A DNA stretch of 64,000 bases from Blastocladiella emersonii ATCC 22665 (Eukaryota; Fungi; Blastocladiomycota). A program made the position numbers and the translations under genes. The stretch covers positions 186,001 through 250,000 of the forward strand of contig JANHCV010000007.1 of NCBI GenBank assembly GCA_025594325.1. Direction: 5' to 3'. The first letter of the stretch is position 1. Every line of letters begins with the position of its first letter. This document shows, one piece after another, positions 1-49,734 of this stretch. Under the pieces are notes generated by a model. It searched no databases. It saw only the letters and a program-made list of their open reading frames with translations, and was not told the origin of the DNA.

Positions 1-1
1 C

Positions 2-12929: not shown

Positions 12930-13836
12930 GCCGCTCTGTCTTGTTCCAGCTCACGGGGAGGCCACCGATCTCACCAAATCGAGTGAATGAGAAGAGACCC
13001 GAGATCTAGTGGACGCGCGGGGCTGGCAAGAGCCCGCAGAACATCGAGAAGATCAACGACCTCAGAGGACACGAGCGAGATTGACACACAAGAACCGCGG
13101 CCATCTATTCTACGACGAGCAAAACAAAGGGAGGGAGAGGGACACACACGCGCTCGACACCGCACCGACCATGGACCGGTCGCCGTGGACCGCGCTCTCG
13201 CCGCCGTCAGCCACCAGGGTCGCCGGTGCCGCCCGCCGCGACACCGTGGGGCGACCCGAGGAGGATGGTGATGACGACGACGACGAGGAGGAGGAGCGCG
13301 GTTCCGTGAGCTGGGCGACGGACCGACCGACCGACCGCACGCGCGAGAGTGGACGAGTGCCCGAGCGTTGCCGTGCGAGACCAGCTGTGGACGTGACGTG
13401 CCTGCCCCCGAATACACACGATCCACACCCGCCCGTCATACTCACCATGACCGCTTCTCCTCCCGTTGCAGGAAACACGCACGCGCACGTGAATCCCCGG
13501 GTACGAAGAAGATGGCACCGCAAAAGGCAGCCGACAGGTCAATCTAGCAAGCAATCGGAGCGAGCGCGGCGCGAGAGCACCGGCGACAGGAGTGCGGAAG
13601 CGACAAGGGTAGGAGTGGAGGAACAGGTTGGTGGAGCGAGGGGAGGGGTGGGTAGAGTAGCGAAGGGTGGGTGCGCGAACACGTCAGAGGTCCGTTGCTG
13701 GTCCGTACAGGGGCCGGTTGCTGTCGGTCGTGGTGGAGGGTGCAGGTGCAGGCGCAGGTCATGGTCGAGTCGAGGGCTGGTCGGGCCGGGTACGAGGTGG
13801 ATCGGGTCGGGTCGGGTGTGGCGGCACCGGCGCCGC

Positions 13837-16800
13837 CTACTGGCCGCCGCAGATCTCGTACCACAGGTAGTCGATGGTGGTGTCGACGCAGTAGTTGAAG
13901 ATGACCATGACGGCGCCCTTGACCGTGTCGTCGCACTGCATGCCCTGGTCGTGCTTGGTCCGGGCGTACGCGGCCAGGTCCTGCTGGTGCGCGGGCACGT
14001 AGCGCCCGAGCCGGATGTTCTGCGGTGGCGAGATGACCGTCTCGACCGAGCCCGTGCTGCCGGCCTCCGACACGTCGTCGTCATGGTCGTCGGCCTCGGC
14101 CTCGGCCTCCCACTGGTCCACGGCGCCGTCGACCTGCGCGTCCGTGTACACGAACCCGTGCGGCGCGGAGTGGTACTGGACGGCCTGCTTCTGCTGCTGC
14201 TGACGATGCGTCGCCTCAATGGCGGCGACGGCGTGGAACTGCTGCTGCTGCTTCTGCTGCGCCTTGAGGGCGGCGACGTGGAACTTGAGTCGCTGCAGCT
14301 TGTGCATGAGCGTGATGATGACCTGGGTCCGGATCTCCTCGTGCTCCTTGACCTCGGCGGCGGCGACCATGGCGGCGACCGCGACGGCCATCGACTTGAC
14401 CTGCACCGTGGGCGCCTCCTGCCCCTTCTCCTCCCTCTCGGTGCCGTGGGTCGAGTCGCTCTTGGCGACGACGAGCTGCTGGGTCTGCTCCTCCTCGAAC
14501 GAGACCTCCTGGTACTGCAGCTGCTGGTAGTGGTAGTCGTCGATCTTGGTCGGGTCCTGGGTCGCGGCCATGGTCGTGTCGGCAATGACGTTGATGGTCG
14601 ACGTCGCGGCGGCGGCGGTGGCAGTCGAGACGGCGGCGGGAGCCGTCTCGGTGCAGGCCGCGCGCGACGGCAGCTCGAGCTCCTGGGCGGCGAGGTCGTG
14701 GACAGCGGCGGCGGCGACTGGGGCGGGGATGGTGGTGGTGGTGGGTTCCAGTGCCAGCTGCGTGCCAACGACCTCGGTGGGCTCGACCTCCTCGTCCTCG
14801 TACAGCTGCTGCGTGAACAGCATCGTGACGACGAGCAGGACGGGGAGGACCTTCTGCTTGGCGGGGACGACGACGTCGGGGGCGGGGATGGTGGGACCCG
14901 TCGTCATCGTGGTGCCGAGAGGTGCTGCGCGAACGACCATCGTGGTCGTGGTCGTGGTCGTGGTGTCGCTCGGGTACTCGCGCGGCGCGTCGGCGAGCTG
15001 GTGGTACTGCTCGAGCTCCATGGCGCTGTCGCGGCGAGAAGGCGCCGGTGCCTTCTTGCCGACCACCTGCTGCTCGTCGGCCGACGGCGACGAGCTGCTA
15101 CTGCTGTTGCTGCCGCTGCGAGTAGTGGGACCCGAGTACACGACCATGGTCTTGATGTCGGTGGCCGCGGCGCCGGCGGAGGCCGAGTGGGCCTTGCCGC
15201 GCTGCTCCGAGAACGTCGACGGCGACGTCTTGACCGCCATGCGGTACGCGATGAACTTGGCGATCGCCGGCGCAAAGAAGCGCGCGGCCTCAATGATGAC
15301 CTGGATCAGCTTGACCGCGTACATGATGGACTGGACCGGGTGCGTGATGATCTGGACCGCAAGCGAGTTGCCCGCGACCAGCACCCGGACCGCGGCGGCC
15401 GCGCACTCGGCCATGGGCCCGAGCACGACGGCCGCCACGAACTTGACGAGCGACCCCGCTATCCGGGCCGCCCACTCGAGGACCACGCGTCGGGCCCGCC
15501 GCGAACGGCCGAAGCCCTGCTGGTGCGCGTTCTCCTCGTCGACTTGGACGAGCAGCTGGTGCGAACTATGGGGTAGCGAGATGAAATGTCAGTCGTGCCC
15601 CAGTCGCGGACCTCACGCAAGGATAGAAGCGTACCCGTAGATGATGGTCGCGTTATCGGTGCCAGCCTTGATCGTGTACATGTGGCCAGAGCCTTGGAGT
15701 AGCCCGCGCAGACTACAGAGGGGAGTGAGAAGGTCAGTCGAGGTCATCGTGGTGCGAGGATCGAGTGAGGTGAGGGCATGCCCCTGGGTTTTGGTCGCGC
15801 GGGTGAAGCTACCCTTTTCCATGTGCACGTTGAGCGCCTTGTTGAGCATGCACACAATCGTCGCTGAGACCCGGCGCGCCATGAACGTGGCCGCGCCGCC
15901 GAGCATCCCCGCCGGAGCCCGGCCGTACTGGTCCCAGATAGCGGCGACGCTACAACGTGGTGAGGGGTCAGTGATCGAGTTCCGAGAGCGAGCCAGGCAG
16001 CGAGGAGAAAACGTACATGGTGAGCATGTAGCGCAAAAAGAGACCCAGACTCGTCGTTTCCGTCCGACCCGACTTCTTGACCTTGGCCTTGGCCTCGATC
16101 TCGATCTCGATCTCGATGGACTCCTCGACGGCATACACGTGGCGCGACGCGGTGGTGAACACGCGGTAGTAGCGGAAGACAATCGACGTGGCCAGGAGGA
16201 GCGTGACGACGCCCGTGAACGCGAAGGCGACGTGGCGCGGGAAGCTGATGTTGAGCTTGACCTGGCGGAACGTATTGCCGAGGACGTGCTGGCGGACCGG
16301 GTCGGCGGCCGCGTACAGCAGCGCGTACGCCTTGCGCTCGACGGGGGTCAGGGCGCGGCACACGCCCGAGCCGGCGTCGAGGACGATCGGGATGGCGTTG
16401 AGGACGACGGCGGCGGGCTCGGGGATAGTGGCGGCGACGAGCGAGGTCGGGACGGGGTCGGGCACGCCGTCGACGGCGATGCGCGTCGTGATGGGCTGGG
16501 CGACGGGCGCGGGAAACGTGGCCTCGAGGTCGGCCGTGGTGGCCGTCGGGGCCGGAGTCGGCCGCGGGAGGCGGCGGCGCAGCAGGTCGATGATCGTGTA
16601 CGCGGGCCGGGTCGTGTCGGACTGGCGGAAGCACGTCCAGTCGCTCTTGCACTTGATGGTCGCCCACTCGAGCTGGCTGGGCGACGTGAGCTCGTAGTTG
16701 TGGCCGAGCGGGAACCGCGCGCGGTACTGGTACCACAGGAGCGTGGCCTCGGACACGCCGAGCATGGCGCGCGGCGACTTTTCGGGCTTGCGGGGGCGGA

Positions 16801-17243
16801 TTGGGCCGATGACTACATGCGCGTCGGGACGGGTCACGGTGAGTGGGGTGGCGCGGCTCGTGGGGGTGGGAGACGCGTCGAGGGGGCGTACCGAAAAAGG
16901 GCGCGTAGCGGTCGATGAACGGGTCGACGACGACGGCGGCGGCGGCGGGCTTGGTGTGGCGCATGGCGGGAGCGGGGACGATGACGGCCAGGTCGGTCGA
17001 GTTGTACACGGCCGGCGCCGGCGCGATGGGCTTGGGCGGGGCGGGGATGCACGCCGGGACGGCGCCGAGCGGGGCGGGAACGAGGAGGCAGAGGGCGGGC
17101 AGGGAGACGGACACGGCGACCGACACGTTGGCGGCCGCGGCGGCGACAGCGAGGGTGGCGTTGCCGACGGCGAGGAGCGGGGCGACGGCGGCGACGGTGG
17201 ACACGCTGAACATGGCCTGGAAGGCGAGCAGCGCGAACACCAT
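13837..17243 (-). CDS. Unknown protein with a hydrophobic N-terminus, a TM-like segment and a Thr/Ala/Gln-rich C-terminal half (left IR copy)
   Basis: Mirror of 45578-48984. Introns at 16813-16891, 15950-16016 and 15566-15634 join the ORF pieces in frame. Confidence 0.65.
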
Positions 17244-17331
17244 CGCCCCGAAGATGGGCGAGGACGAGGGGCTGCATGGTTGCGGCGGCGGTGGACCGGA
17301 TCGGGGTGGACCAGGTACTACTTCTTGGGGA

Positions 17332-17355
17332 TCTTCTTCTTCTTCTTCTTCTTCT
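17332..17355. repeat. (TCT)8 microsatellite; mirror (AGA)8 at 45466-45489
   Basis: Read directly. The repeat number is the same in both arms. Confidence 0.9.
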
Positions 17356-18760
17356 CGAGACTGTCGGTTAGGACATGAGGAACGAGAGGGAGGGGGAGGG
17401 CGGGGACGCGGCGCGGTCTTGTAGGCGCGGGCGGGCGGGGCAGCAGGCCGGTAGCGCGAGCACCCGCCGGACGCGGGCACCGACGCGTCGCGATGCTCGA
17501 GCGCGGCTGCCGCATCCGTCGTCGTCGTCGTTGTTGTTTTGGAGACGCGTCGCCGTGGACCCGTGTCTCGCGACGCGTCGATGCGTCGCGGCGGCCGAGG
17601 TGGAGACACGCGAGACGTGCAGCGGGCCGCAGCGACACGTGCCCGACGCGTCGCGGCGGGTGCGAGACACCCGGGCGGAGACACGGCGAGATCAGGTGGG
17701 CGAGGGCGACCGCATCGTGAGCGAGGCGGGCGGCGGGTGCGCGCGGTGGACGCGTTGGGCGGTGCGAGTCGGTCGAGCAGCGGGGCACGGCGCGGCGCGT
17801 GCGGGCGAGGCCGAGGCCGAGGGTGTATCAAGGTGATGATGAAGGAGAGCAGCGGTGCGAGTCGCTGCAGGTGGAGGGGAGGGCGGTGGGAGACCGGCCG
17901 TGGTCGGCTGCTGTCACGCCACCGCGGCCGCGAGCAGCGACCACTTTGGCGCGCGTCAGCGGCGTGCGCGCGCGCGCTCGCGGCAGCCGCAGATGGTGAT
18001 GGATCTCGAGGAGGAACGAGGGCAGGAACTCGATGCAAGGCGATGGGCGGGCGCCGGCGAGCACGGTGGCGGGCCGCGGCGCGGTAGACGTGGTCGGTCG
18101 TGGACTCGGTCAGGAGCGGATGCAGTCGGGCGCGAGGGAGAGGCGAGCGAGACCGATGCTGATGAGCCGAGTGATGAGTGATGAGCGGCTGATGATGACG
18201 GAGAGCACCGCCGCTCCCACACGCGTTTCGGGCCGCCGCCTCGCCGCCGACTTGATCGGGCTCGCCCCCCTCCCTCCTCTCCTTCACTTCGGCAATCGCT
18301 CCCGCAAAAGTACTCGCACACCATGCAGCAGACGCGCGGATGGCAGCGAACGCGCCCGCCCGCCCGGCCTCGGCCACGTCGCGACGGCGCGTCCGACGCC
18401 GATCGCGCGAGCTCGAGGCGGTCTTGTGGGTGTCGATGCATTGCGGAAAGTGAAGAGAGTGTGCTGATCGCCCCGAGACTACGCCGTCGTCGCCTTCTCG
18501 TCGGTCGACGCGGACGGCGGTGCTACGCGCCTTCGCCGACGCGAGATGACGTCATCCGACCCCGCCACGTGCACATGAGTGCCGCGTCGTTCCGCTTGCC
18601 CCTTCGACCGTTCCCGACGTGAGCGCCGGCCTTGTGTTGCCCTTCTGCCCGTCCAACACTCGGTGTAACTCTGCTCACCGGGCGGATCGCAGGGCTGTCT
18701 GACTTGCCGCTCTCCGACCCGTCGTTGACCCTTCGCTCTCCCTCAAGTTGCTAGTTTATG

Positions 18761-18940
18761 TGCTCGTAGGACGCTCGCACGCACTTAGTCTCTCGATCAA
18801 ACCGTGTGAGGCGAGAAGTGAGCAACATGGAGATCTCGTACTACCGTCGCTACTGTGCATCGCAAATTCCGCCACGCGCCGGGCCCGTGGTGGCCTCGCC
18901 ACGCTCTGAATCCCGGTCGAACTGCTCTTTGATCTCCCCT
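18761..18940. repeat. Diverged inner flank of the inverted repeat (homologous to 43881-44060)
   Basis: Gapless manual alignment gives 128/180 identical positions (about 71%). Confidence 0.85.
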
Positions 18941-18980
18941 TGATGCTCGTCGCCGTCCGCCTTGCCGAGCCGCTGAACTG

Positions 18981-19520
18981 TTACGTGCTCAGTGTGCGTG
19001 TTGTACGACTACCGCGACACGAGATAAGGGGCCGACACAGGCTATCAGCAATCTTCTCGCTCGACTTCAGGAATCGCAGTTCTAGCGCGACTGAAGCTTT
19101 CATCCGTGAGCTCGTCGAAGAACAACCGCACATGCTCCACTCCCAGGTCATTGTTCCGTTGAGGAAACGCTGGTCGCGTATCAAGCTCGGCTGACTAACA
19201 ATGCCAGTCTGATCTACAACAGGCAGCTTGACGCCCTCCTCGTCGCTATCAACGTAGTTGTCGAGCACAAATCCGCAGTAAGTCTGACTCGATGCACTAG
19301 CGCCTCGAGCCTTCGCACCTCCCCATTTGTCGCGTTCTCAATCAAAATTCCTGGTCGCGGCGCCGCCGAGGCCGCTCCCGCCGCGATAGCTCCCTTGTCG
19401 AGCCGTTGTACGCCATCACCAACCGCTGGAACAGCCACGGCACTTTTTCGGGCACCGTTGTCAGCAAGATCGACCGCCAAGGGTGTGAGGCTTTGCGTTA
19501 GATAAGCCGTGAGGGATACG
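18981..19520 (-). mobile_element. Possible highly degenerate Ty1/copia RNase H remnant
   Basis: LTAY..DLADNGARKS, and downstream LELRFLKSSEKIADSLCRPL, resemble the copia motifs DADWAG..RKS and l.l.yv...q.ADILTKPL in the right order, but across broken frames. Confidence 0.25.
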
Positions 19521-19527
19521 AATCGGT

Positions 19528-19776
19528 TCATTTTTTCATCGTGGTGAGCCCGTCGAGCGTCTCGGAGAAGTGCGTGAACACGGGCGAGTTGAGGACCATG
19601 TACACGCGCTGGATCTCGTGGCTCGCCGACAGGTACCACGACTGGATCAGCACGAACAGGATGACGACGGGCGCGAGGACCACGATGACGAGCGGCGCCG
19701 CGACCAGGATCGTGATGAGCGTCGCGATCGTCTGCAGGCCCATGAACTGCAGCTGGCTGATCTGCTGCGGGATCAT
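19528..19776 (-). pseudogene. Isolated fragment of an ABCC/MRP-type ABC transporter transmembrane domain 2
   Basis: IATLITILVAAPLVIVVLAPVVILFVLIQSWYLSASHEIQRVYMVLNSPVFTHFSETLDGLTT matches the Y...SRELKRL.....SP.F.HF.ETL.GL.TIR motif. No NBD or other exons are nearby. Confidence 0.75.
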
Positions 19777-19886
19777 CACAGAGGGCACCACTGACGATGG
19801 TGTTTGAAAGCAAGTAGTAGTAATTATTGCGAACCGTACGACTAAACCAACCAAACCAAAGCCACTCACCCGCGCGCGCGCCGAAT

Positions 19887-22507
19887 TTACTTGTTCTTCT
19901 TGCCGCTGACGAACGGGCTCGCGAGGACCGGGATCGCCGACGGGATCTCCATGATGCGGCCGATGAGGAGCTGGAGGTACTCGAGTAACCGCTCGTTCTC
20001 GGACGTCGAGGCTACATCCACACACGAAGGTCAGCTCCGTCTCCTTCATCACAGTAACCGAGCCACCGTACCCTGGAGATCCTCGCGCAGACGAATCTTC
20101 TCAATGTCGAGGTCGTCGCCGGCGTCGCGGTCTTGGGCGACGAGCCCGCCGGGCGCGCCCGCGCGGTACTTCTGGATCATGGCGTCCTTGTACTGCTGGG
20201 CCTCGGACACGGGAGCGGGCTTGGCGGCGGCCTCCTCGTTCTTGATCACCTCGATGGCCTCGTTGACGGACGCACACGACAGCGCCTTGGTGAGGGTCGG
20301 CGGGAGGTTGGCGAACGAGGCCTGTCGCGACAGGGGCGCGTTGCGGCCCGCGAGCTTGCCGGCCACGACGCCGCCCGTCGCGAGCTGCTGGTGCAGGAGC
20401 GCGTTCTCGCGCTGGAGGTGGGTGACGCGCTACACCGAGTTGAAAAGTGAGTCTCCGGGTCTACACGAAACTAGACGACCACCAGCGAGCGAACCTGCGA
20501 TAGCCCGTCAACCTGCTCCTCGTGGATCTGGTGGAGGTCGTGCAGCTGGCGCTGGAGCGAGTTGCACAGCTTGACGAGGGCGGGGCGGTCGAGGCCATCG
20601 ACGGACACGGGGACGAACGAGAGCATCGACTTGGACAGGGCGAGCGGCGACAGGACGGGGCGGGCGACGGGCTCGACGAGCGGTGGTGGCACGCGTTCCG
20701 GGATCGGCGCGGCAAGAGGCGCGACCTCAGTCGTGATGGCGGGCTGGGGGAGCGAGGCGAGGAAGTAGTCCTGCTCGGCGAGGTCCTCGTCGGGCAGGGG
20801 GATTTGGGACTACGTGAGCGAGAGAGGTGTCAGTGTGGTTCGAGGTTCACGTCACGAGAGAACGTACAGCAAGATCGACAAACGACGGCGAGTACTCGAG
20901 CTGCTGCTGCCGTGGCTGTTCTGACTCGGGTGCATGGTGCTGCACGTCCTGCGGGACCGGGACGTCGACAAACTCCTGCCGCTGCTGCTGCTGCTCGGTC
21001 ACGACAGCCGCGACCGGCTCGACCTGGGGCGCCTCAGCCTGGACCGTGTCGACAGCGGCCACCGGCTCGCCCTCGAACCCGTCGAACAGGTGCTCGGCCG
21101 AGTGGACGGGCGCGCCGGCGATATCCAGTACGGTGCCGGCGTTGAGCGACTTGGCCGACTGCGTCTTGGCGAGGCGGTCCATGGACGCGAGCTTGGGGTT
21201 GGACGCCGAGGTGGCGGCGCCGGCGAGCCGCTCGACGGACCGGCCCGTGAGCTGCTCGGTCGAGCGCGTCGCGGTGCCGAGCGACTTGACCGACGACGCA
21301 CCGCCGAGTCGCTCGGTCGAGCGCGCCGTGGACTGGACGTTGCCGTCCTGCGCGAGCTGCTCGGTCGACCGAGTCACGCGGCCGAGGGATTTGACCGACG
21401 CCGCGCCGCCGAGGCGCTCCGTGGACCGCGCCGCGTCCTGCGCGGGCTGCTCAGCCGACTGGACGTCGCCGCCCGTGAGCTGCTCCGTGGACCGGGTCAC
21501 GCGGCCGAGCGACTTGACCGAAGACGCACCGCCGAGGCGCTCCGTCGACCGTGCCTGGTCCTGAGCGAGCTGCTCGGTGGACCGGGTCGCATTGCCGAGC
21601 GACTTGACCGACGACGCGCTAGCGAGCCGGTCCGTCGACCGCGCCGTGTCCTGGGCGAGCTGCTCGGTCGACCGCGCCGCCTTGTTGAGCGACTTGACGG
21701 ACCCGGCGAGGTGCTCGGCCGACTTGATGGCCGACGCCGCATCGGCCGACTGCGCGTCGGCGAGGTGGACCGCGGATCCAGTCGTTGCCGCGGCCTGCGC
21801 GTCGTCGGTGGTTAACTCGGACTGCTGCTGGTGCTGCTGGTGCTGCTGGTGCTCCTCGACGTGCTCGGCGACACGGTCATGTGGCTTCTCGACCGTCGGC
21901 GTCGCGTCATCATCCACCACCACCTGCGCCGCCGCCGCCATCGGGTTCTCCACGGCCTCAGCCGGCGCGTCGGGGTCCGCGAGCCGGAACACCGACCCGT
22001 GCTGCTGCTGCTGCTGCTGCTGCTCCTGGAGCCCATCCCCGTCGATGCTCGCGGCGGTGGACTCCTCCTCGTGGATCGCCGACTCGCGGTGGTCGGCGCC
22101 GTGGACCGTGGGCGCGTCGCTCACGACACTCGACGCGCTGCCGGCGACACTGCCCGTGCTGCGCGCGAGGAGGAGGTTGCGGCTGCCGGCAGACCCGATG
22201 CGCGTCGAGGGCGACGCCGTGTACGCGGGGTTGCCGGCGTTGCCGCCGGCGCCGAGGCTGTGCGCGGACCCGCCCGCGATGGCCGACGCGCTGATGGTGT
22301 CGGTGCTCACTACACGGAGGCATGCGGTGAGTGGGAGGAGCAGAAAAGGTGGGAGAGGCGCCAGGACGTACCGAACATGGCGGACCCGAGGTCCGGGTTG
22401 GCCAGCTGCTGCGGCGGGAGCGGGGCGAGCTCGGACGCCGAGACGCGGTGCGGCGGCGGGTCGAAGCCGCCGGGCATGCCGGACGGCGCGTCGTCGAGGT
22501 CGGCCAT
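19887..22507 (-). CDS. Low-complexity/coiled-coil protein with internal tandem repeats and a C-terminal Rab11-FIP RBD-like motif
   Basis: Five exons, with GT-AG introns at 22371-22310, 20867-20810, 20494-20430 and 20071-20012 that keep the frame. C-terminus is KIRLREDLQASTSENERLLEYLQLLIGRIMEIPSAIPVL, with TAA at 19889-19887. Confidence 0.7.
21229..21720 (-). repeat. Coding tandem repeat, about 5 units of about 29 aa: SVKSLG..TRSTEQLAQD.ARSTERLGGAS
   Basis: Seen in the translation of ORF 20847-22733 and as recurring gagcgacttgaccga / gagctgctcggt in the DNA. Confidence 0.9.
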
Positions 22508-22756
22508 GGCTACGTTGGTAAGTGTGTGTGGGTACGCGATGAAGTATTCGTCGCGGAGATGCGTTTGCAGGAGGAGGGGGGAGAGTGCAGCGAGTTGTGC
22601 GCGATCCAGGCGGGGCTGGATGCGGATGTGGTGCCTTTGCTTGGCGGCGACGGCGTCTCCCCGTCGGGCTTGGCAGCGAGGCGAGGCGAGGCGAAACGGA
22701 AAGCGCGTCGCGACGCGTCTCCCGCCTCCCCACGTGAGCCGGGCGTGACTGTCTCG

Positions 22757-22806
22757 CACGCGTTTCGTCTCGCGCGTTTCGTTCACGCGTTTTGTCTCTC
22801 GCGTTC
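22757..22806. promoter_or_regulatory. Cluster of four CGCGTT repeats, including two ACGCGT (MCB-like) sites
   Basis: ACGCGT at 22758-22763 and 22785-22790, plus cgcgcgttt and ctcgcgtt, 250-300 nt upstream of the ATG at 22507. Confidence 0.4.
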
Positions 22807-22910
22807 GCTTCACCTTTCGGTGAACGCGCCGCTCAAGCAGACCTAGGAAAAGCGAGAAACCAAACGAGCAGTATATCCAACCCTCTACTCCACCATCACC
22901 AACCTCGACC

Positions 22911-25000
22911 TCACCAGTCATCCGAATCATCACTATCCTCGTCGGAATCATCACTCGAGCTCCCCTCGACCCCGTTCCGCCGCTTATCCATGGCGTTCTT
23001 GAGGATCGCCGCGAGCCCGCCTGCGCCCGCCGCCGCACCCGCACCAGCCGCCGCCGCGGCGGGACCTGCACCAGCACTCGAACTGCCCGTATCGTGTGCG
23101 GCAACCGACGACGCGCGGCTGACGCCCGCGGACCCAGCGGGCGGCGCCGAACTCGCCTTGCGCAGGTTCGCGTGCGAGAAGCCCTGGATCGACGCGAGCA
23201 GCGCGTTGCGCTCGGGGACCACGGCCGGGAGCGCCGGGCCGGAGGTGCCGTTCGCGGCGGGCGGAGGGGGAGGGGGCGGGGGACCGCCGGACCCCATCAT
23301 CGGGGGTGGGGGCGGGGGAGGCGGAGGAGGCGGGCCGCCGGACCCCATCATGGGCGGCGGGGGAGGTGGAGGCGGCGGAGGCGGTCCACCCGCGGGCTTA
23401 GCGACCACGACGGCCGGCGGCGGCGGGGGCGGCGGTGGCACCGAGGTCGGGGCGACGGGCACGCTGCGCGACGGCGGGAGCGCGGGCGGCACCACCGGAC
23501 TCGATCCCTGTGCAGACATGGACCCGGCGCGCGGCGGGAGCGGCGGGGCAGCGGCACGCCCCGCTGCGGGCGGCGGGGGAGGCGGGGTCGCGCGCGCAGG
23601 AGCACCGGGTCGGCCGGGCGGCGGTGGGGGCGGCGCCCGGTTCCCGCGGGCAGGCGGGGGCGGGGGCGGGCCCCGGTTCCCGCGCGAGGGAGGCGGCGGA
23701 GGAGGTCCGCGGCGGCCGGGTGGCGGGGGCGGGGTCGCGGCGGAGCTCGGGCGCGATGGGGGAGGGGGCGGCGGGCCGCGGTGCGCGGCGGACGGCGGGG
23801 TCGGCGGGGCGCGCGGCGGGGTCGGGCGCATGGGGGCCGGCGCCGGGGTCGTGTACGGCGACGCTGCAGCTGCGGGAGCAGGAGGCGGCGGCGGCGGCGC
23901 ATGGGATGGGCGGTGCGTCGCGGCAGCGGGCGAGGGCGCGACAGGCGGAGCGAACGCGGGCTTCGCCGCAGCGGGCGGCGCGCCGGCGGCCTCGGCGAGG
24001 TTGACGCCGTTGCGCTCGGCGTCCTTGAGGGTCTTGAGGATGAACTTGCGGGTGTTAGCGTCCTGCATCATGTCGTCGGAGATGCCGGCGAGGTGGATGG
24101 CCTCGCGCCACTCGGGCTTGAGGTTGGTCACGACGAACTTGCCGTCGTCGCCGAGCTTCATGCCCGAGACGTGGCGGAAGTCGGACGGGCCCGAGATCAT
24201 GGACTTGTCGAAGACGGGGCGGCCGGTGGGGGTGACGGTGGCGGTCTTGGAGGACTTTTTGTCCTTTTTCTCCTTTTTCTCCTTTTTCTCCTTCTTGGAC
24301 TTTTTCTTGTCCTTGTCCTTGCCGTTGGTGGCGACCGCCGGAGTGGACGGGGCCGAAGCGGCGACGGGCGAGAAGGCGGCCTTGACGGAGCCGTAGGGCG
24401 AGGTCGGGGTGGAGGAGGCACCCGCGAGGCGCGCGGAGGCCGTGGCTGCGGTGATGGCGGTGAGGGCGGGCGCCTTGGCGACGGTGGGCGAGAAGGCCGA
24501 GTGGACCGGCGCAGGTGCAGGCGCGGGCGCGGGGATAGCGGCTTTGACGGCGGCCGCAAAGGTGCGCGCCTGGGCAGCGTCGGCAAAGGCGATGCCGAGC
24601 ATCACGTCCTATTCCGCGAGAACGGTGAGCCAACGCAGCGAGCACGCCAAAACGGCACAAACGTACGTCGCCCTCAAAGGTGTGGAACCGCGGCAGGTCC
24701 TCGGCGTACTCCATGGCGCGGTACAGCTGCTGCTGCCAGCCGACGGTCGAGTCGGCCTGGTTGACGAGGTAGACGTAGGTGCCCGACTCGCTGGCGACGA
24801 GCGCCGCGACGCCCTCGGCGACGAGCTCCCAGCGTGCGTCAAAGGCCGCGTAGAAGCGCGCGGCGGCCGTGGCCGTTGGCTAGTATCATCGGTGGCGGTG
24901 AGGACGCGATCCAAGCGCGGGTGCGCGAGGCAGAGCATACCGCGATGCCCAGGGCGGCCACGACGAGCGCCTCGTTGGCCTCGGCGGTGCCGAATATCAT
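22911..25000 (-). CDS. WAS: WASP-family Arp2/3 activator (WH1, basic region, CRIB, poly-Pro, WH2-C-A)
   Basis: Introns at 24940-24880 and 24666-24609. WH1 (ARFYAA..WQQQLY..FHTFEGD), Lys-rich basic tract, CRIB ISGPSDFRHV, poly-proline, WH2 RNALLASIQG..LRK and acidic end DDSDDW. Start codon is tentative. Confidence 0.92.
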
Positions 25001-25212
25001 TTGCTGCGTGTGCGTGTAGTAGCGGCGTGGTTTGGGGGAGAGAAGGTTGCGGGCGGTGGCGGGCTCGTTCTTGGCACCGACGCGCTCCCGAAAGAGAGAT
25101 GAGGCTGAAAGACATCGCGTGACGCCGCTTCCCTCCCCCTCTCTCCCCTCATCGCATCCCCTATCCAACGCAACGCATCAACACTTATTCCAACCTACTG
25201 CAACGTGCTTGG

Positions 25213-26982
25213 ATGACCGCTGCCGGAGCACACCCGCCACCGCCACCACCGCCTCCCGAGGACGCCGTCATGGCGGACGCCGCCGCCGTCGCCCCGGCCG
25301 CGCCGACCGTGGCCAGCGTCGCCGTCGGGTGCAAACTCCTGGTCCTGATGGAGGCCGAGGGCCCCGACGCGTGGCGCAAGGCCGAGGTCCTGTCGATCCG
25401 CTTCGCCGACCGCGGCGCCGACCTGACCGAGTTCTACGTCCACTACGTCGACTACAACAAGCGCCTCGACGAGTGGGTCCCCGCGCGCCGCCTCAACCTC
25501 GCCTCGCTCGAGTTCCCGCGCTCGCGCAAGTCCAAGGCCGCCGCGGGCAGCGGCAAGGGGTCTCCCGCCGTCGGCAAGGGCGCGACGAGCGGTGGGCGCA
25601 AGGGGTCGAGCAACTCCGCGTCGAAGAAGAACTCGGCGACGGGCCGACGCAAGGGTAAGGGCGAGCGCGAGCGCGCGGCCAAGGCTGCTGCTGCTGCCGC
25701 TGCGGCTGCTGCTACTGCCGCCGCCGAGTCCGAGACTCGTCCCGCCGACGATGGGTCCGCGACCCCGGACCTCGCCACCCTCGCCGGCACCACCTCGAGC
25801 ATGCTCGGCGGGACCCACGACGGCGACCACGACCACGACATGGACGACCTCGACGACGAGGAGACCCGCACGGGGCTCGGCGACGCCGACCACGACGACG
25901 ACGACGATCTCGTCAGCGGGCTCGGCGACGACGCCGCCACCGCGAGCCAGCCGCCCACGCGACCCGGCACGCCCTCCGCGTCCAGCGAGCCGGCCTCGGG
26001 CGCCTCGCGCGTCGCAGGCTCCGGGGCCGCCGCCACCGCCGGCACCTCCGGGGGAGTCGAGGGCACCTTCTCGAAGGCCGCCGAGCGCGAGAAGCTGCGC
26101 ACGGGCGGGTCCATGACGCAGTGCGTCTCGGAAATCTCGCGCGTCAAGAACCTGAACAAGATCCAGATGGGCCGGCACGTCGTCGAGACGTGGTACTTTT
26201 CGCCGTACCCGCTCGAGTACGCGTACATTGACACGCTGTACCTGTGCGAGTTCTGCCTGTCGTACTTTGCGTCGGCGCGCGCGCACGAGCGGCACCGCGC
26301 GAAATGCACGCTGACGCACCCGCCGGGCAACGAGATTTACCGGAAGGACGAGCTGTCCTTCTTCGAGATCGACGGCCGCAGGCAGAAACAGTACTGCCGC
26401 AACCTGTGCCTGCTGTCGAAATGCTTCCTCGACCACAAGACGCTCTACTACGACGTCGACCCGTTCCTCTTCTACATCATGACCGTCTCCGACGAGCACG
26501 GGTCGCACATTGTCGGCTACTTTTCCAAGGAAAAGGAGTCGGCCGAGGGGTACAACCTGGCCTGCATCCTTACCCTCCCGCAGCACCAGCGCAAGGGGTA
26601 CGGCCGCCTGCTCATCCAGTTCAGCTACGAGCTGTCGCGCGTCGAGCGCAAGCCCGGGTCCCCCGAGAAGCCCCTGTCGGATCTCGGCCTCCTGTCGTAC
26701 CGCGCGTACTGGACCGAGGTCCTCGTCGACTACCTCCTGCAGCACCCCGAGGTCACCCTCGACGAGGTCGCCGCGGCCACCGCGATCACGGTCGGCGACA
26801 TCCTGCACACGCTGCACGCCCTCAACGCGCTCCGGTACTACAAGGGCCAGCACATAGTGTGCCTGTCGCAGGCGTGTATCGACAGCCACGCGCGCCAGGC
26901 CGCGAAGCCGCGGCGGAACATTGACCCGGCGTGCCTCGACTGGAAGCCGCCCGTGTTCGCCAAGGAGCGGTACCTCAACTGA
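25213..26982 (+). CDS. ESA1: MYST-family histone acetyltransferase, NuA4 catalytic subunit (Esa1/Tip60)
   Basis: Tudor-knot/chromo N-terminus (FYVHYVDYNKRLDEWV), C2HC zinc finger (CEFC..H..C) and MYST core (YCRNLCLLSKCFLDHKTLYYDVDPF, QRKGYG, GSPEKPLSDLG). Confidence 0.95.
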   Translation: MTAAGAHPPPPPPPPEDAVMADAAAVAPAAPTVASVAVGCKLLVLMEAEGPDAWRKAEVLSIRFADRGADLTEFYVHYVDYNKRLDEWVPARRLNLASLEFPRSRKSKAAAGSGKGSPAVGKGATSGGRKGSSNSASKKNSATGRRKGKGERERAAKAAAAAAAAAATAAAESETRPADDGSATPDLATLAGTTSSMLGGTHDGDHDHDMDDLDDEETRTGLGDADHDDDDDLVSGLGDDAATASQPPTRPGTPSASSEPASGASRVAGSGAAATAGTSGGVEGTFSKAAEREKLRTGGSMTQCVSEISRVKNLNKIQMGRHVVETWYFSPYPLEYAYIDTLYLCEFCLSYFASARAHERHRAKCTLTHPPGNEIYRKDELSFFEIDGRRQKQYCRNLCLLSKCFLDHKTLYYDVDPFLFYIMTVSDEHGSHIVGYFSKEKESAEGYNLACILTLPQHQRKGYGRLLIQFSYELSRVERKPGSPEKPLSDLGLLSYRAYWTEVLVDYLLQHPEVTLDEVAAATAITVGDILHTLHALNALRYYKGQHIVCLSQACIDSHARQAAKPRRNIDPACLDWKPPVFAKERYLN

Positions 26983-35871: not shown

Positions 35872-36560
35872 ATGGATCCAGCGCCACCGTTCAAACCGAC
35901 ACGGACGAGCGTGACGGTGATTCACACGGACCCGACCGAGCTCTTTGACCCGTTCCGCGACTCGCATGCCGCCGACGTGTTTCTTTATCACGATGCCAGC
36001 ATCCCCGGCCGCATCCTCTATGCACTTCTATGCGGCTTCAACGACTTGCGCTCGGTTGCGCACACGCTCGGCGAGGCGGAGCGGAAGGGGTCTCAAGCCG
36101 CCATGTCCTTCACGCTCAGCGACCTGCGCGCTGAACCGATTGCTCGCTCGCTTCTCATCCTGAACGCGCTCATGAACTGGACACTCGACCGCGCTTTATT
36201 GGGCAGCTCTGGTTTTCAGAGCACCTCGAGGATGACGCGCTAACTTTCTGGATCGAGCAGATGCAAGATTGCCTTCACGTCGACTGGCTCGCAGCTTTTC
36301 CACAAGTGCGCGTCGCAAGTGATGAGACGCTCCAAGCCGTTCGCGCTTGCTGGAGCACTTGGCTCGAGCGGTGCGACTCCCAGCCAACTTCAGCCGAGCA
36401 TGCGGCTGCTCGCGCAAACCTTCTTGCGGTTGACCCGTCGCGTCTTCCTCGGCTTAACAAAGGCTTTGATCCCACCGCAAAGTGGAAGAATGACCGGACC
36501 CAAACAGTTCGCGAGACTCTCATTCTACGCTCCCGCGTACCGCTTTATCCCACGATTTAG
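35872..36560 (+). pseudogene. Truncated DUF4470-like gene relic (paralogue of 57721-61298)
   Basis: GFNDLRSVAHTLGEAERK..SDLRAEPIARSLLIL and IGQLWFSEHL..FWIEQMQDCL..VRACWSTWL align to the full gene. There is a -1 shift at the T-run 36195-36197 and the gene stops after about 230 codons. Confidence 0.7.
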
Positions 36561-42128: not shown

Positions 42129-43230
42129 TCAGCTGATATCAATGGCAGACGACGACATTTGCAGGGTCAGCCCGCCCGGCTCGAGGAACCGGCTGAGCTC
42201 GCCGAGCTCCTTGAGCATGGGCTGCGGGATGAGGTAGAGCAGGGTCGTAAGGGAACGGGCCTCGCGCTGGAGCTTGCGGATCACCAGCGCAATGTACGCG
42301 GCGAGGCACGAGCACGTCGCGATGACGAACGCTGCGAACGTGAGGATGCAGAACGACTGGCTCTGCGCGACGCGCTGGTTGAGGACCGCCTGGATCGAGC
42401 TGTCGATGAGGCCGAGCCGAAGCACAATGTCGTCGGTCAGCGCCATGAGCAGGCTCCACTGCTTGTACGCCTGGCTCGACAGGTCGCTCGTGTTGGTCGA
42501 GGTCGTGGCCATGAGGTCGATGACCTGCGACGCGACGTCGAGCATGCGGTCGATTTCGCTGTTGAGCGGGAGACTCGCAACGGACCGCGTGAAGTCGATC
42601 TCGGGCCGGTCGACGACGCCGTCGCAGTTGCCGGGAATGGAGCAGTCGCGCGGCAGGATAGACAGCTCGGGCAGCAGCTGGTTGATCAAGCTCGAGTCGC
42701 TTGTGCAGGTTCGAGATGTCGAGGATGGCACCGAGGCTGCTGCGCACCGTTGAAACTACAATAGTCGGCGATTAGTCGTCAGAACTAATGAGGAACGAGC
42801 GTTTGGGCGCGTCACGTTCGGGTCGAAATGGTCGTGTCGGGCGAGATGAACTCGCGCGTGTACAGGCGCAGCGTCAACGTAGTAGCGGCGGTCTGGAGGC
42901 AAGATGATCAGAATGGGCGTGGTGGATCCAAGCAAAGGGATAGATGCGTACCGTTAGACGCCACCATGAGCTCCATGTTTTCCTGCAGCTGAACTGACCG
43001 CAGCGTCATGGTGAACATTGAGATGGCGATGCCCGCGAGCAAAATGAGCCAGCCAGCCCACGAGCGCGATGCGGTACTTGAACTCGCGCCCGCGGCCGAA
43101 CCGATCGCCCGAGTTCTCGCCCGAGCCCGCGACGGCAGAGGTGGACTTGAGATCCTTGTCAAGCGCCTCCGAGTCCTCGTTTCGCCGGCGTTTCCATTTC
43201 CGCTGCCACGCCGCCGGTGGAACCGGCTGC
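42129..43230 (-). pseudogene. 5'-truncated, frameshifted second Tmc-like gene (C-terminal part only)
   Basis: SN|DRRYY..LRLYTREFISPDTTIS and REARSLTTLLYLIP..FLEPGG align with the C-terminus of 36759-41768. Frameshifts near 43050 and 42870, and no N-terminal exons were found. Confidence 0.65.
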
Positions 43231-43880
43231 TCGTTGCATGGTGTCGTCGTGGGCTCAGTTGTTGGATCCGATCAGTATAATGGGTAGGTAGGAGCGTAAT
43301 AAATTGCTGCGATCAGCTTTGGAGGTGGACAAGAAGCCGGACTGCCAGCGGAGAGAGAGCCGCTCAAGGCGGCGGGGCGACCATCCCGCTCCTTTTGGTG
43401 AGAGCCGGACCGGTGGGCGGAAAACTCGATCGCTAGACCAGATGTATCAGAGCAGGCATCGCCGAGGCGGCGATCAGTGTTGCGACTACCTGCGCGGCAA
43501 TGCCTCCCAGTGTGGGTCGCGGGCGTTGGCAAGTATCGCGCGCACAGTGACAGTGGCCGATCGACGGTCCCGATGCAGCGCGCCAGTGGCATTTGCAGGC
43601 GGTCAACAGCCAGCGTGCTCGCCAGAGCTGCCTGGGCAAGCTGCCTATGGTCAACGTGTGGGACGCGTCCCTACGCGTCGGGCTCGCGCGAGACGGAGGC
43701 ACGTGGGCGGCGTATTGGTGGCGCCGATCTGGCTTCTCTCCTGACCTCGCCGCATCGGCATCGCTGCAGGTATTCCTTCCAGAACAGGTGAGCGAAGAAG
43801 TCGAGCGAGAGAGTGTATAGCAGACCATTCCGACCGCTCCGACGGTCGTCTTACAGGGCACGTCACTGATGAGTAGCATC

Positions 43881-44060
43881 AGGGGAAGTTAGAGAGCCGT
43901 TGGATCAGGATACTGTGCGTGGCGAGCCCATCATGGGCCCGGCGCGCGGCGGGGATAGCAACGTACAGCAGCGACGGTAGAAAACGGCTGCGATGTTACT
44001 CACTTCTCGCATAACAAGATTCAATCGAGAGTCTCGCTGCGTGGAGGCGTCTCTTGCGCG
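43881..44060. repeat. Diverged inner flank of the inverted repeat (homologous to 18761-18940)
   Basis: About 71% identical, gapless, by manual count. Confidence 0.85.
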
Positions 44061-44088
44061 CATAAACTAGCAACTTGAGGGAGAGCGC

Positions 44089-47000
44089 AGGGTCAACGAC
44101 GGGTCGGAGAGCGGCAAGTCAGACAGCCCTGCGATCCGCCCGGTGAGCAGAGTTACACCGAGTGTTGGACGGGCAGAAGGGCAACACAAGGCCGGCGCTC
44201 ACGTCGGGAACGGTCGAAGGGGCAAGCGGAACGACGCGGCACTCATGTGCACGTGGCGGGGTCGGATGACGTCATCTCGCGTCGGCGAAGGCGCGTAGCA
44301 CCGCCGTCCGCGTCGACCGACGAGAAGGCGACGACGGCGTAGTCTCGGGGCGATCAGCACACTCTCTTCACTTTCCGCAATGCATCGACACCCACAAGAC
44401 CGCCTCGAGCTCGCGCGATCGGCGTCGGACGCGCCGTCGCGACGTGGCCGAGGCCGGGCGGGCGGGCGCGTTCGCTGCCATCCGCGCGTCTGCTGCATGG
44501 TGTGCGAGTACTTTTGCGGGAGCGATTGCCGAAGTGAAGGAGAGGAGGGAGGGGGGCGAGCCCGATCAAGTCGGCGGCGAGGCGGCGGCCCGAAACGCGT
44601 GTGGGAGCGGCGGTGCTCTCCGTCATCATCAGCCGCTCATCACTCATCACTCGGCTCATCAGCATCGGTCTCGCTCGCCTCTCCCTCGCGCCCGACTGCA
44701 TCCGCTCCTGACCGAGTCCACGACCGACCACGTCTACCGCGCCGCGGCCCGCCACCGTGCTCGCCGGCGCCCGCCCATCGCCTTGCATCGAGTTCCTGCC
44801 CTCGTTCCTCCTCGAGATCCATCACCATCTGCGGCTGCCGCGAGCGCGCGCGCGCACGCCGCTGACGCGCGCCAAAGTGGTCGCTGCTCGCGGCCGCGGT
44901 GGCGTGACAGCAGCCGACCACGGCCGGTCTCCCACCGCCCTCCCCTCCACCTGCAGCGACTCGCACCGCTGCTCTCCTTCATCATCACCTTGATACACCC
45001 TCGGCCTCGGCCTCGCCCGCACGCGCCGCGCCGTGCCCCGCTGCTCGACCGACTCGCACCGCCCAACGCGTCCACCGCGCGCACCCGCCGCCCGCCTCGC
45101 TCACGATGCGGTCGCCCTCGCCCACCTGATCTCGCCGTGTCTCCGCCCGGGTGTCTCGCACCCGCCGCGACGCGTCGGGCACGTGTCGCTGCGGCCCGCT
45201 GCACGTCTCGCGTGTCTCCACCTCGGCCGCCGCGACGCATCGACGCGTCGCGAGACACGGGTCCACGGCGACGCGTCTCCAAAACAACAACGACGACGAC
45301 GACGGATGCGGCAGCCGCGCTCGAGCATCGCGACGCGTCGGTGCCCGCGTCCGGCGGGTGCTCGCGCTACCGGCCTGCTGCCCCGCCCGCCCGCGCCTAC
45401 AAGACCGCGCCGCGTCCCCGCCCTCCCCCTCCCTCTCGTTCCTCATGTCCTAACCGACAGTCTCGAGAAGAAGAAGAAGAAGAAGAAGATCCCCAAGAAG
45501 TAGTACCTGGTCCACCCCGATCCGGTCCACCGCCGCCGCAACCATGCAGCCCCTCGTCCTCGCCCATCTTCGGGGCGATGGTGTTCGCGCTGCTCGCCTT
45601 CCAGGCCATGTTCAGCGTGTCCACCGTCGCCGCCGTCGCCCCGCTCCTCGCCGTCGGCAACGCCACCCTCGCTGTCGCCGCCGCGGCCGCCAACGTGTCG
45701 GTCGCCGTGTCCGTCTCCCTGCCCGCCCTCTGCCTCCTCGTTCCCGCCCCGCTCGGCGCCGTCCCGGCGTGCATCCCCGCCCCGCCCAAGCCCATCGCGC
45801 CGGCGCCGGCCGTGTACAACTCGACCGACCTGGCCGTCATCGTCCCCGCTCCCGCCATGCGCCACACCAAGCCCGCCGCCGCCGCCGTCGTCGTCGACCC
45901 GTTCATCGACCGCTACGCGCCCTTTTTCGGTACGCCCCCTCGACGCGTCTCCCACCCCCACGAGCCGCGCCACCCCACTCACCGTGACCCGTCCCGACGC
46001 GCATGTAGTCATCGGCCCAATCCGCCCCCGCAAGCCCGAAAAGTCGCCGCGCGCCATGCTCGGCGTGTCCGAGGCCACGCTCCTGTGGTACCAGTACCGC
46101 GCGCGGTTCCCGCTCGGCCACAACTACGAGCTCACGTCGCCCAGCCAGCTCGAGTGGGCGACCATCAAGTGCAAGAGCGACTGGACGTGCTTCCGCCAGT
46201 CCGACACGACCCGGCCCGCGTACACGATCATCGACCTGCTGCGCCGCCGCCTCCCGCGGCCGACTCCGGCCCCGACGGCCACCACGGCCGACCTCGAGGC
46301 CACGTTTCCCGCGCCCGTCGCCCAGCCCATCACGACGCGCATCGCCGTCGACGGCGTGCCCGACCCCGTCCCGACCTCGCTCGTCGCCGCCACTATCCCC
46401 GAGCCCGCCGCCGTCGTCCTCAACGCCATCCCGATCGTCCTCGACGCCGGCTCGGGCGTGTGCCGCGCCCTGACCCCCGTCGAGCGCAAGGCGTACGCGC
46501 TGCTGTACGCGGCCGCCGACCCGGTCCGCCAGCACGTCCTCGGCAATACGTTCCGCCAGGTCAAGCTCAACATCAGCTTCCCGCGCCACGTCGCCTTCGC
46601 GTTCACGGGCGTCGTCACGCTCCTCCTGGCCACGTCGATTGTCTTCCGCTACTACCGCGTGTTCACCACCGCGTCGCGCCACGTGTATGCCGTCGAGGAG
46701 TCCATCGAGATCGAGATCGAGATCGAGGCCAAGGCCAAGGTCAAGAAGTCGGGTCGGACGGAAACGACGAGTCTGGGTCTCTTTTTGCGCTACATGCTCA
46801 CCATGTACGTTTTCTCCTCGCTGCCTGGCTCGCTCTCGGAACTCGATCACTGACCCCTCACCACGTTGTAGCGTCGCCGCTATCTGGGACCAGTACGGCC
46901 GGGCTCCGGCGGGGATGCTCGGCGGCGCGGCCACGTTCATGGCGCGCCGGGTCTCAGCGACGATTGTGTGCATGCTCAACAAGGCGCTCAACGTGCACAT

Positions 47001-49734
47001 GGAAAAGGGTAGCTTCACCCGCGCGACCAAAACCCAGGGGCATGCCCTCACCTCACTCGATCCTCGCACCACGATGACCTCGACTGACCTTCTCACTCCC
47101 CTCTGTAGTCTGCGCGGGCTACTCCAAGGCTCTGGCCACATGTACACGATCAAGGCTGGCACCGATAACGCGACCATCATCTACGGGTACGCTTCTATCC
47201 TTGCGTGAGGTCCGCGACTGGGGCACGACTGACATTTCATCTCGCTACCCCATAGTTCGCACCAGCTGCTCGTCCAAGTCGACGAGGAGAACGCGCACCA
47301 GCAGGGCTTCGGCCGTTCGCGGCGGGCCCGACGCGTGGTCCTCGAGTGGGCGGCCCGGATAGCGGGGTCGCTCGTCAAGTTCGTGGCGGCCGTCGTGCTC
47401 GGGCCCATGGCCGAGTGCGCGGCCGCCGCGGTCCGGGTGCTGGTCGCGGGCAACTCGCTTGCGGTCCAGATCATCACGCACCCGGTCCAGTCCATCATGT
47501 ACGCGGTCAAGCTGATCCAGGTCATCATTGAGGCCGCGCGCTTCTTTGCGCCGGCGATCGCCAAGTTCATCGCGTACCGCATGGCGGTCAAGACGTCGCC
47601 GTCGACGTTCTCGGAGCAGCGCGGCAAGGCCCACTCGGCCTCCGCCGGCGCCGCGGCCACCGACATCAAGACCATGGTCGTGTACTCGGGTCCCACTACT
47701 CGCAGCGGCAGCAACAGCAGTAGCAGCTCGTCGCCGTCGGCCGACGAGCAGCAGGTGGTCGGCAAGAAGGCACCGGCGCCTTCTCGCCGCGACAGCGCCA
47801 TGGAGCTCGAGCAGTACCACCAGCTCGCCGACGCGCCGCGCGAGTACCCGAGCGACACCACGACCACGACCACGACCACGATGGTCGTTCGCGCAGCACC
47901 TCTCGGCACCACGATGACGACGGGTCCCACCATCCCCGCCCCCGACGTCGTCGTCCCCGCCAAGCAGAAGGTCCTCCCCGTCCTGCTCGTCGTCACGATG
48001 CTGTTCACGCAGCAGCTGTACGAGGACGAGGAGGTCGAGCCCACCGAGGTCGTTGGCACGCAGCTGGCACTGGAACCCACCACCACCACCATCCCCGCCC
48101 CAGTCGCCGCCGCCGCTGTCCACGACCTCGCCGCCCAGGAGCTCGAGCTGCCGTCGCGCGCGGCCTGCACCGAGACGGCTCCCGCCGCCGTCTCGACTGC
48201 CACCGCCGCCGCCGCGACGTCGACCATCAACGTCATTGCCGACACGACCATGGCCGCGACCCAGGACCCGACCAAGATCGACGACTACCACTACCAGCAG
48301 CTGCAGTACCAGGAGGTCTCGTTCGAGGAGGAGCAGACCCAGCAGCTCGTCGTCGCCAAGAGCGACTCGACCCACGGCACCGAGAGGGAGGAGAAGGGGC
48401 AGGAGGCGCCCACGGTGCAGGTCAAGTCGATGGCCGTCGCGGTCGCCGCCATGGTCGCCGCCGCCGAGGTCAAGGAGCACGAGGAGATCCGGACCCAGGT
48501 CATCATCACGCTCATGCACAAGCTGCAGCGACTCAAGTTCCACGTCGCCGCCCTCAAGGCGCAGCAGAAGCAGCAGCAGCAGTTCCACGCCGTCGCCGCC
48601 ATTGAGGCGACGCATCGTCAGCAGCAGCAGAAGCAGGCCGTCCAGTACCACTCCGCGCCGCACGGGTTCGTGTACACGGACGCGCAGGTCGACGGCGCCG
48701 TGGACCAGTGGGAGGCCGAGGCCGAGGCCGACGACCATGACGACGACGTGTCGGAGGCCGGCAGCACGGGCTCGGTCGAGACGGTCATCTCGCCACCGCA
48801 GAACATCCGGCTCGGGCGCTACGTGCCCGCGCACCAGCAGGACCTGGCCGCGTACGCCCGGACCAAGCACGACCAGGGCATGCAGTGCGACGACACGGTC
48901 AAGGGCGCCGTCATGGTCATCTTCAACTACTGCGTCGACACCACCATCGACTACCTGTGGTACGAGATCTGCGGCGGCCAGTAGGCGGCGCCGGTGCCGC
49001 CACACCCGACCCGACCCGATCCACCTCGTACCCGGCCCGACCAGCCCTCGACTCGACCATGACCTGCGCCTGCACCTGCACCCTCCACCACGACCGACAG
49101 CAACCGGCCCCTGTACGGACCAGCAACGGACCTCTGACGTGTTCGCGCACCCACCCTTCGCTACTCTACCCACCCCTCCCCTCGCTCCACCAACCTGTTC
49201 CTCCACTCCTACCCTTGTCGCTTCCGCACTCCTGTCGCCGGTGCTCTCGCGCCGCGCTCGCTCCGATTGCTTGCTAGATTGACCTGTCGGCTGCCTTTTG
49301 CGGTGCCATCTTCTTCGTACCCGGGGATTCACGTGCGCGTGCGTGTTTCCTGCAACGGGAGGAGAAGCGGTCATGGTGAGTATGACGGGCGGGTGTGGAT
49401 CGTGTGTATTCGGGGGCAGGCACGTCACGTCCACAGCTGGTCTCGCACGGCAACGCTCGGGCACTCGTCCACTCTCGCGCGTGCGGTCGGTCGGTCGGTC
49501 CGTCGCCCAGCTCACGGAACCGCGCTCCTCCTCCTCGTCGTCGTCGTCATCACCATCCTCCTCGGGTCGCCCCACGGTGTCGCGGCGGGCGGCACCGGCG
49601 ACCCTGGTGGCTGACGGCGGCGAGAGCGCGGTCCACGGCGACCGGTCCATGGTCGGTGCGGTGTCGAGCGCGTGTGTGTCCCTCTCCCTCCCTTTGTTTT
49701 GCTCGTCGTAGAATAGATGGCCGCGGTTCTTGTG
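44089..49734. repeat. Right arm of the 5646-bp inverted repeat (partner 13087-18732)
   Basis: Mirror ORFs are identical. Beyond 49734 homology continues but is diverged (gagaagatcaac(g/a)acctcagaggacacga). Confidence 0.95.
45578..48984 (+). CDS. Unknown protein with a hydrophobic N-terminus, a TM-like segment and a Thr/Ala/Gln-rich C-terminal half (right IR copy)
   Basis: ATG at 45578 (MVFALLAFQAMFSVS). Introns 45930-46008, 46805-46871 and 47187-47255 link three ORF frames. TM-like HVAFAFTGVVTLLLATSIVF. A further intron near 47040-47108 is possible. Confidence 0.65.

Follow-up and report, generated by a model that had tools for sequence, protein, structure and literature searches.

Two questions are raised by a pair of inverted 5.6-kilobase (kb) arms in the genome of the fungus Blastocladiella emersonii ATCC 22665: why the arms are identical to the last nucleotide (nt) when the homologous DNA beside them is diverged, and whether the gene-bearing block that they enclose is inverted as a switch. 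The arms lie in a stretch of 64,000 nt, here called the window, on record JANHCV010000007.1 of assembly GCA_025594325.1 (window position = record position − 186,000; positions below are those of the window unless another record or locus is named). We favour, and consider probable, a history in which an old pair of inverted paralogues, 25 kb apart, has recently been homogenised over 5,646 base pairs by intrachromosomal non-allelic gene conversion.

The window contains one large inverted repeat, which a repeat search placed at 13087–18940 / 43881–49734. When compared base by base, the identical core of the left arm (13087–18732) and the reverse complement of the right core (44089–49734) show 0 mismatches in 5,646 nt, the 95% upper bound for the core being 5e-4 differences per site. 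Identity is lost abruptly on both sides, homology is not. The left inner flank (18733–18950) starts with a single mismatch at 18733, is identical again for 27 bases up to 18760, and from there to ~18947 agrees with the other side at only ~72% of ungapped positions. Its mirror, the right inner diverged flank, lies at 43875–44088, and a gapped alignment of 18761–18947 with 43875–44060 gives 72% identity with 1 gap column and a Kimura two-parameter distance (K2P) of 0.36. The outer flanks (12920–13086 on the left, 49735–49901 on the right) agree at 66% of 156 aligned sites and are separated by three indels, 22 gap columns and a K2P of 0.46, their best local segment being 73% identical over 94 nt (E-value 4e-12). 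In total, the collinear diverged flanks amount to 170–220 nt per side and are 66–75% alike; beyond ~12920 and ~18950 the gapped comparison found no homology between the two sides. The spacer thus consists of a unique block of 24.9 kb (18951–43874), which is gene-bearing, plus the diverged inner flanks. An (AGA)8 microsatellite occurs once per arm at mirror positions, 17332–17355 (minus strand, ~90 nt upstream of the ATG) and 45466–45489 (plus strand), where 0 such matches would be expected by chance. A preliminary description of this DNA had reported identical mirror arms, the equal (AGA)8 length, inner flanks of about 71% ungapped identity and outer flanks diverged with indels, and all of this was borne out, its coordinates and identities being accurate.

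Each arm is one unit of ~6 kb, an orphan membrane-protein gene together with its own 1.49 kb of upstream and 0.75 kb of downstream DNA, and codon-position GC content and translations indicate that both arm genes point outward. The unit also occurs outside the window arms (pair A). A protein search returned two further full-length paralogues on contig 7 (P0002/H9P43_006109 and P0003/H9P43_006136), and the entire unit, including its non-coding DNA, aligns from 18783 to 13089 with two loci, L004 and L005, at 84% and 80%. These loci form a second inverted pair (pair B; record positions ~460.8–468.5 kb and 572.1–579.8 kb, corresponding to 6529–14249 within the fetched locus L004 and 6527–14226 within L005) with a 104-kb spacer and convergent genes. 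Over the first 3.8 kb at the 5' end, and again in several blocks further on, the members of pair B are practically 100% identical. Their 3' halves have diverged strongly, that of L004 being more similar to the window arms than to its partner L005. Pair B has the appearance of a palindrome captured partway through conversion. A truncated solo copy, L006 (P0004, 377 amino acids (aa); JANHCV010000012.1, ~298–301 kb, L006 8925–11857), retains the upstream region and the 5' half and matches 18664–15841 at 85%, with weaker homology to 18845.

A third pair (pair C) is a perfect palindrome on JANHCV010000003.1 (~372.7–390.5 kb; locus L008, 4233–12176 / 14120–22063). Its arms are 100% identical over at least 7,944 nt, as far as the fetched DNA extends; the spacer measures 1,943 nt, and the inner edge is abrupt, without a diverged flank. 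Pair C carries a distant version of the unit, 66–70% alike over 18557 to 13221, and its genes are convergent, those of pair A being divergent. In the arms of pair C the unit is split into two short annotated genes, and a Skp1_POZ-like gene is also present. Pair C lacks the (AGA)n repeat, which counts 8 copies in each arm of pair A, 6 in each member of pair B and 4 in the solo copy L006.

Perfect identity in an assembly may be an artefact, either of diverged copies that were collapsed or homogenised by Pilon, or of two haplotypes joined in inverted orientation. The genome was put together from PacBio HiFi reads (mean 10.5 kb, ~186x) by the La Jolla Assembler; duplicates were purged, and Pilon was used for polishing with old Illumina reads of 65–75 nt (PMC9730499). 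Such short reads are unplaceable inside a 5.6-kb repeat, and the purging of duplicates likewise speaks for an artefact, as do the differing gene models assigned to identical arm DNA, which mark the annotation as imperfect. We therefore turn to the reads, using the window segment 12910–18909, i.e. the entire left arm with 177 nt of either flank, and k-mer contigs (k=31) of four public runs of one sample; contigs of this kind cannot span a 5.6-kb repeat, and the read index and the public data represent one strain.

In the deepest run (X1), the arm contigs begin at exactly 13087 and stop at exactly 18732, as expected if each edge has two different continuations, and the contigs of runs X2 and X3 break at the same two positions. 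One X3 contig exits the arm at 18760 with letters matching the right inner flank, entering it exactly there, so that both inner junctions exist in the reads. Depth in X1 can be scaled internally, as the contig of the solo copy L006 has a depth of 125 (one copy) and a contig common to L004 and L005 has a depth of 312 (two copies). On this scale the arms, at 276–289, are present in two copies; the depth of the two flanks is ~157–175 after subtraction of the contig overlap. Had the arms been collapsed from diverged copies, two alternative paths at 1x each would be expected along the arm, and no such bubble was found in the X1 k-mer contigs, where a single arm path runs at ~2x.

Variant letters do occur in the read contigs, and each has a counterpart in one of the paralogues L004, L005 and L006, so that no arm-specific variants are seen. 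A variant at 7 sites in 15207–15292 (depth 312) and a variant at 15349–15361 represent sequence common to L004 and L005; those at 16699–16783 and 16514–16566 correspond to L004 alone; and those at 16349/16375 (depth 125) and 16599–16621 to the solo copy L006, which explains the variant contigs of one-copy depth. Wherever reference and variant contigs were both recovered in X1, the reference path stays at ~280–290. At 15349–15361 the reference contig was recovered in neither X1 nor X2, and X3 supports the reference there. Mis-joined alleles can also be dismissed, since the two arms have completely different neighbouring genes on either side. Collapse or misassembly of the arms is very unlikely, and we assign to artefacts of either kind the faintest chance among the explanations considered. 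Assembler collapse, named as the main alternative in the preliminary description, is contradicted by the twofold arm depth together with the paralogue-explained variants and the edge-exact contig breaks.

If two identical copies are real, their identity may simply reflect youth, i.e. a de novo inverted duplication too recent to have accumulated differences and without any conversion. This would account for the complete lack of mismatches and for a mutable microsatellite of equal length in both arms, and the abrupt inner edge of pair C, which lacks a diverged flank, may be cited in its favour. It does not account for the collinear homology of 66–75% past both edges, part of which, on the outer side, recurs as weak homology in the distant paralogues L004 and L005: when the outer ends of the four copies are aligned, conserved blocks common to pairs A and B run ~100 nt beyond 13087. 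The identity edge at 13087 is located inside the homology of all four full copies and is thus not a duplication breakpoint. In addition, the divergence between left and right flanks (K2P 0.36–0.46) is comparable to that between pair A and pair B in non-coding DNA (p 0.15–0.36). As a fresh duplication at a new site does not create old flanks that are diverged and in register, we leave this explanation little probability. The combination of such flanks with a near-zero core divergence argues that the copies are old and that the core has recently been overwritten, and the equal (AGA)n length in both arms of pair A contrasts with its variability (8, 6, 4) among paralogues.

Further traces of exchange were detected when pair A (A) and the two copies of pair B (B1 and B2, i.e. 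L004 and L005) were compared by site patterns. From 18790 to 16940, the pattern B1=B2 dominates (score 313 vs 4 and 8), from 16939 to 16403 it is A=B1 (54), from 16402 to 15176 again B1=B2 (137), and from 14649 to 13340 A=B1 (320 vs 35 and 48). The closest-copy relation thus switches along the unit, and mosaics of this kind require recombination or gene conversion among copies, inclusive of inverted copies 104 kb apart and copies ~225 kb apart. Conversion is therefore active in the unit family. The earlier proposal that an old duplication with an abruptly homogenised core implies recent conversion is thereby supported, by the family-internal edge and the flank distances as well as by the mosaics.

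Several points weigh against this interpretation. Formally, conversion is indistinguishable from a recent re-duplication placed onto an older copy through homologous recombination. The shallow, Illumina-like runs X2 and X3 are noisy in depth, with ratios of ~1.0–1.45x. All four runs share one sample and probably overlap the data behind assembly and polishing, and the comparison is confined to one strain. Furthermore, k-mer contigs, as opposed to raw long reads, are compatible with a minor inverted isomer or with rare arm-specific variants.

The ~5.5–6-kb unit, inclusive of non-coding DNA, recurs on three contigs, as pairs A, B and C and as a truncated solo copy. This raises another explanation, namely that the unit constitutes a mobile or fold-back-type element or is carried by one, or that some other process specifically generates inverted pairs. 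However, the unit lacks terminal inverted repeats or long terminal repeats (no terminal direct or inverted repeat >48 nt exists in 12800–19100), and no transposase, integrase or reverse transcriptase domain was found by Pfam in the open reading frames (ORFs) of the arms, so that the unit was rejected as a transposable element. The ends of homology, moreover, differ among the copies, and gene orientation varies from pair to pair, being divergent in A and convergent in B and C. In view of this, we give the explanation as a whole a very slight probability.

Conversion, the reading that we prefer, would probably have taken place when a break in one arm was repaired by homologous recombination, the other arm serving as template. 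The conversion may have occurred in one long tract or in several, and from what is established about homologous recombination, resolution would be via synthesis-dependent strand annealing or a dissolved double Holliday junction. A tract would end where indels and dense mismatches block the extension of heteroduplex, leaving on each side 170–220 nt of old homology with 25–35% divergence. On this reading, conversion is a recurrent passive process in the unit family and in the B. emersonii genome. Resolution as a crossover would yield, as a possible by-product, an inverted ESA1-RAD1 block.

Such inversions are the basis of a biological switch in the yeasts Ogataea polymorpha and Komagataella phaffii, in which a pair of inverted repeats flanks a block of ~19–140 kb that inverts by homologous recombination. 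Inversion there places one mating-type (MAT) locus by a centromere or telomere, silencing it, and both isomers are found. The B. emersonii locus resembles this system in having an inverted-repeat pair around a block of invertible size. It differs in that the block is without MAT genes and without such positional logic, and in that only one isomer has been seen. Long inverted repeats of Candida albicans, the spacers of which are of comparable size, mediate loss of heterozygosity and copy-number change as well as inversions of 4–103 kb (Todd et al. 2019, PMC6591007). The likeness to that species is closer, in that the repeats there are also fungal, ORF-containing and of kb size, with >98% identity and spacers of tens of kb (median ~35 kb at inversion breakpoints; PMC6591007). 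The Candida inversions, however, have been demonstrated in isolates by polymerase chain reaction and sequencing, whereas the B. emersonii locus is known in one orientation from one strain.

Could the 25-kb block of B. emersonii thus be regularly inverted via the arms in a programmed or frequent flip-flop? Identical inverted arms of 5.6 kb are an excellent substrate for recombination, a crossover between them would invert 18.7k–44.1k, and conversion here uses machinery that is also able to yield crossovers. Nevertheless, the 2-Mb contig has a single orientation, even though ~75–80 HiFi reads, as computed from the published read numbers, should span each whole arm with 300 nt on either side. The single assembler path through both arms suggests that one orientation dominates the culture. 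Nor is it obvious what inversion would regulate, as the entire arm gene with 1.5 kb of upstream and 0.75 kb of downstream DNA lies inside the arm, so that neither a promoter-gene nor a coding junction is altered. As both arm genes face outward and are accompanied by their own flanking DNA, inversion would change only DNA located >1.5 kb upstream of each copy. The preliminary description had assumed that a crossover swaps the 3' flanks of the arm genes, which is the wrong way round: it is the far-upstream inner context that would be exchanged. On the inner side the arms adjoin an ABC-transporter fragment and a small gene beside a TmcB-type gene; the DNA beside the inner edges is gene debris, and no expression-changing junction was found at the repeat.

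The block carries housekeeping genes, and no recombinase, transposase or transposable-element Pfam domain was found in the ORFs scanned, a subset of those in the window. We conclude that a programmed switch is unlikely and concede to it only a slight probability, although passive inversion may occur. The earlier interpretation thus retains its conversion part, and its flip-flop part is unsupported, given the single resolved orientation and the lack of an obvious regulatory effect of inversion. The central 731-aa gene shares its strand with paralogues to the left and to the right of the repeat, a parity that agrees weakly with an ancestral status of the present orientation but is made ambiguous by one inverted left-hand paralogue and by an inverted DUF4470 relic.

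From left to right, the central block contains the ABC-transporter fragment (19528–19776, minus strand), a gene for a 1441-aa repeat protein (19887–25000, minus), ESA1 (25213–26982, plus), Rad1 (27007–28542, minus), a 400-aa gene (28655–29914, minus), the 731-aa gene (31834–34990, minus), which has homology to the repeated paralogues located beyond the arms, the DUF4470 relic (~36016–36412), the TmcB-type gene (annotated with 1580 aa, minus strand, ending at 41831) and a 237-aa gene (42129–43009, minus). The gene labels proposed earlier were confirmed for ESA1, Rad1 and TmcB, while the label 'WASP' for 19887–25000 was unconfirmed by Pfam. An inverted-repeat centromere of the Candida tropicalis or Schizosaccharomyces pombe type was also considered and rejected, as the core is gene-rich (ESA1, Rad1 and others) with a strong coding signal.

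Five paralogues of one large gene are situated in and around the repeat (window 1–12900, 31834–35600 and 53400–57100), four on the minus strand and one (~900–4565) inverted. The DUF4470 relic is inverted relative to a full DUF4470 gene at ~59.7–61.5 kb, and DUF4470 genes also adjoin the pair B copy L004. To the right of the repeat, an open frame of 993 codons (50059–53040, minus strand) has a GC content at third codon positions (GC3) of 0.66, and the annotation covers only 190 aa there (50059–50631). Possibly it is a gene that escaped annotation or is decaying; a look-up of the 925-aa ORF at 50059–52836 found no annotated product to match.

The arm gene itself is located at 13837–17243 (minus strand) in the left arm and at 45578–48984 (plus strand) in the right arm. 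The frame profile of GC3 (~0.95) and the translations indicate ~3–4 exons, which in the left copy are at ~17243–16860, 16780–15971, 15880–15780 (a short exon near these positions) and 15588–13840. In the public annotation, identical arm DNA carries two different gene models, one of 1047 aa on the left (13837–17715) and one of 1007 aa on the right (H9P43_006051). Compared with the pair B paralogues, a frame change has removed the first 11 codons of the arm genes, which start at an ATG further downstream.

According to hydropathy and translation, the arm protein has a signal-peptide-like N-terminus, several hydrophobic segments and long stretches rich in Thr, Ala and Gln. No Pfam match was obtained for eight arm ORFs, the ESM Atlas returned only neighbours at noise level (<=0.54), and a profile search among 1.84 billion representative proteins detected paralogues only, with no homologue outside B. 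emersonii. An AlphaFold2 model on a 3-sequence alignment was unusable (mean predicted local distance difference test score 28), and tRNA and Rfam scans gave no matches in the window, including the non-coding parts of the arms.

The best-known counterparts of such a structure are the palindromes of mammalian sex chromosomes (P1–P8 on the human Y, others on primate and mouse X), the arms of which are kept at >99% identity by arm-to-arm conversion (PMC8600007, PMC8327919, bioRxiv 10.1101/800185). Shared features are gene-bearing inverted arms, a unique spacer and near-perfect identity that is attributed to conversion rather than to youth. The differences concern size, as the arms are 5.6 kb here and 9 kb to 1.45 Mb in mammals; the spacer, which here is 4–5x the arm length and carries housekeeping genes; and the organism, a zoosporic fungus with no sign of a sex chromosome. 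Also, the evidence for conversion consists here of diverged flanks and paralogue mosaics, in mammals of cross-species orthologues. Within a single strain, the B. emersonii locus shows the features of a conversion-maintained palindrome: inverted arms that are >99% identical, two real copies, and an identity younger than the duplication.

The locus is thus best read as a further case of a known type of structure, a gene-bearing inverted repeat that is kept identical by conversion. It represents ordinary concerted evolution of inverted paralogues, although a clean example, as old edges that escaped conversion are preserved beside the converted core, and the outgroup copies of the family record additional conversion tracts. 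Much of its interest lies in one orphan-gene unit being found in three separate inverted pairs. Annotators and those who map reads should be aware that the model strain of B. emersonii has exact repeats of several kb; the words 'inverted' and 'palindrom' are absent from the genome paper (PMC9730499).

A much broader possibility is that B. emersonii keeps many gene units as continually copy-corrected inverted pairs, in the manner of a Y chromosome, and that the ESA1-RAD1 block flips at a measurable somatic frequency. We consider this rather doubtful, but if true, it would be a genome-wide way to preserve or amplify genes. No sexual cycle is known in B. emersonii. Should there truly be an excess of perfect gene-bearing palindromes, confined to inverted pairs, it would bear on how duplicate genes are repaired and maintained in a putatively asexual, early-diverging fungus.

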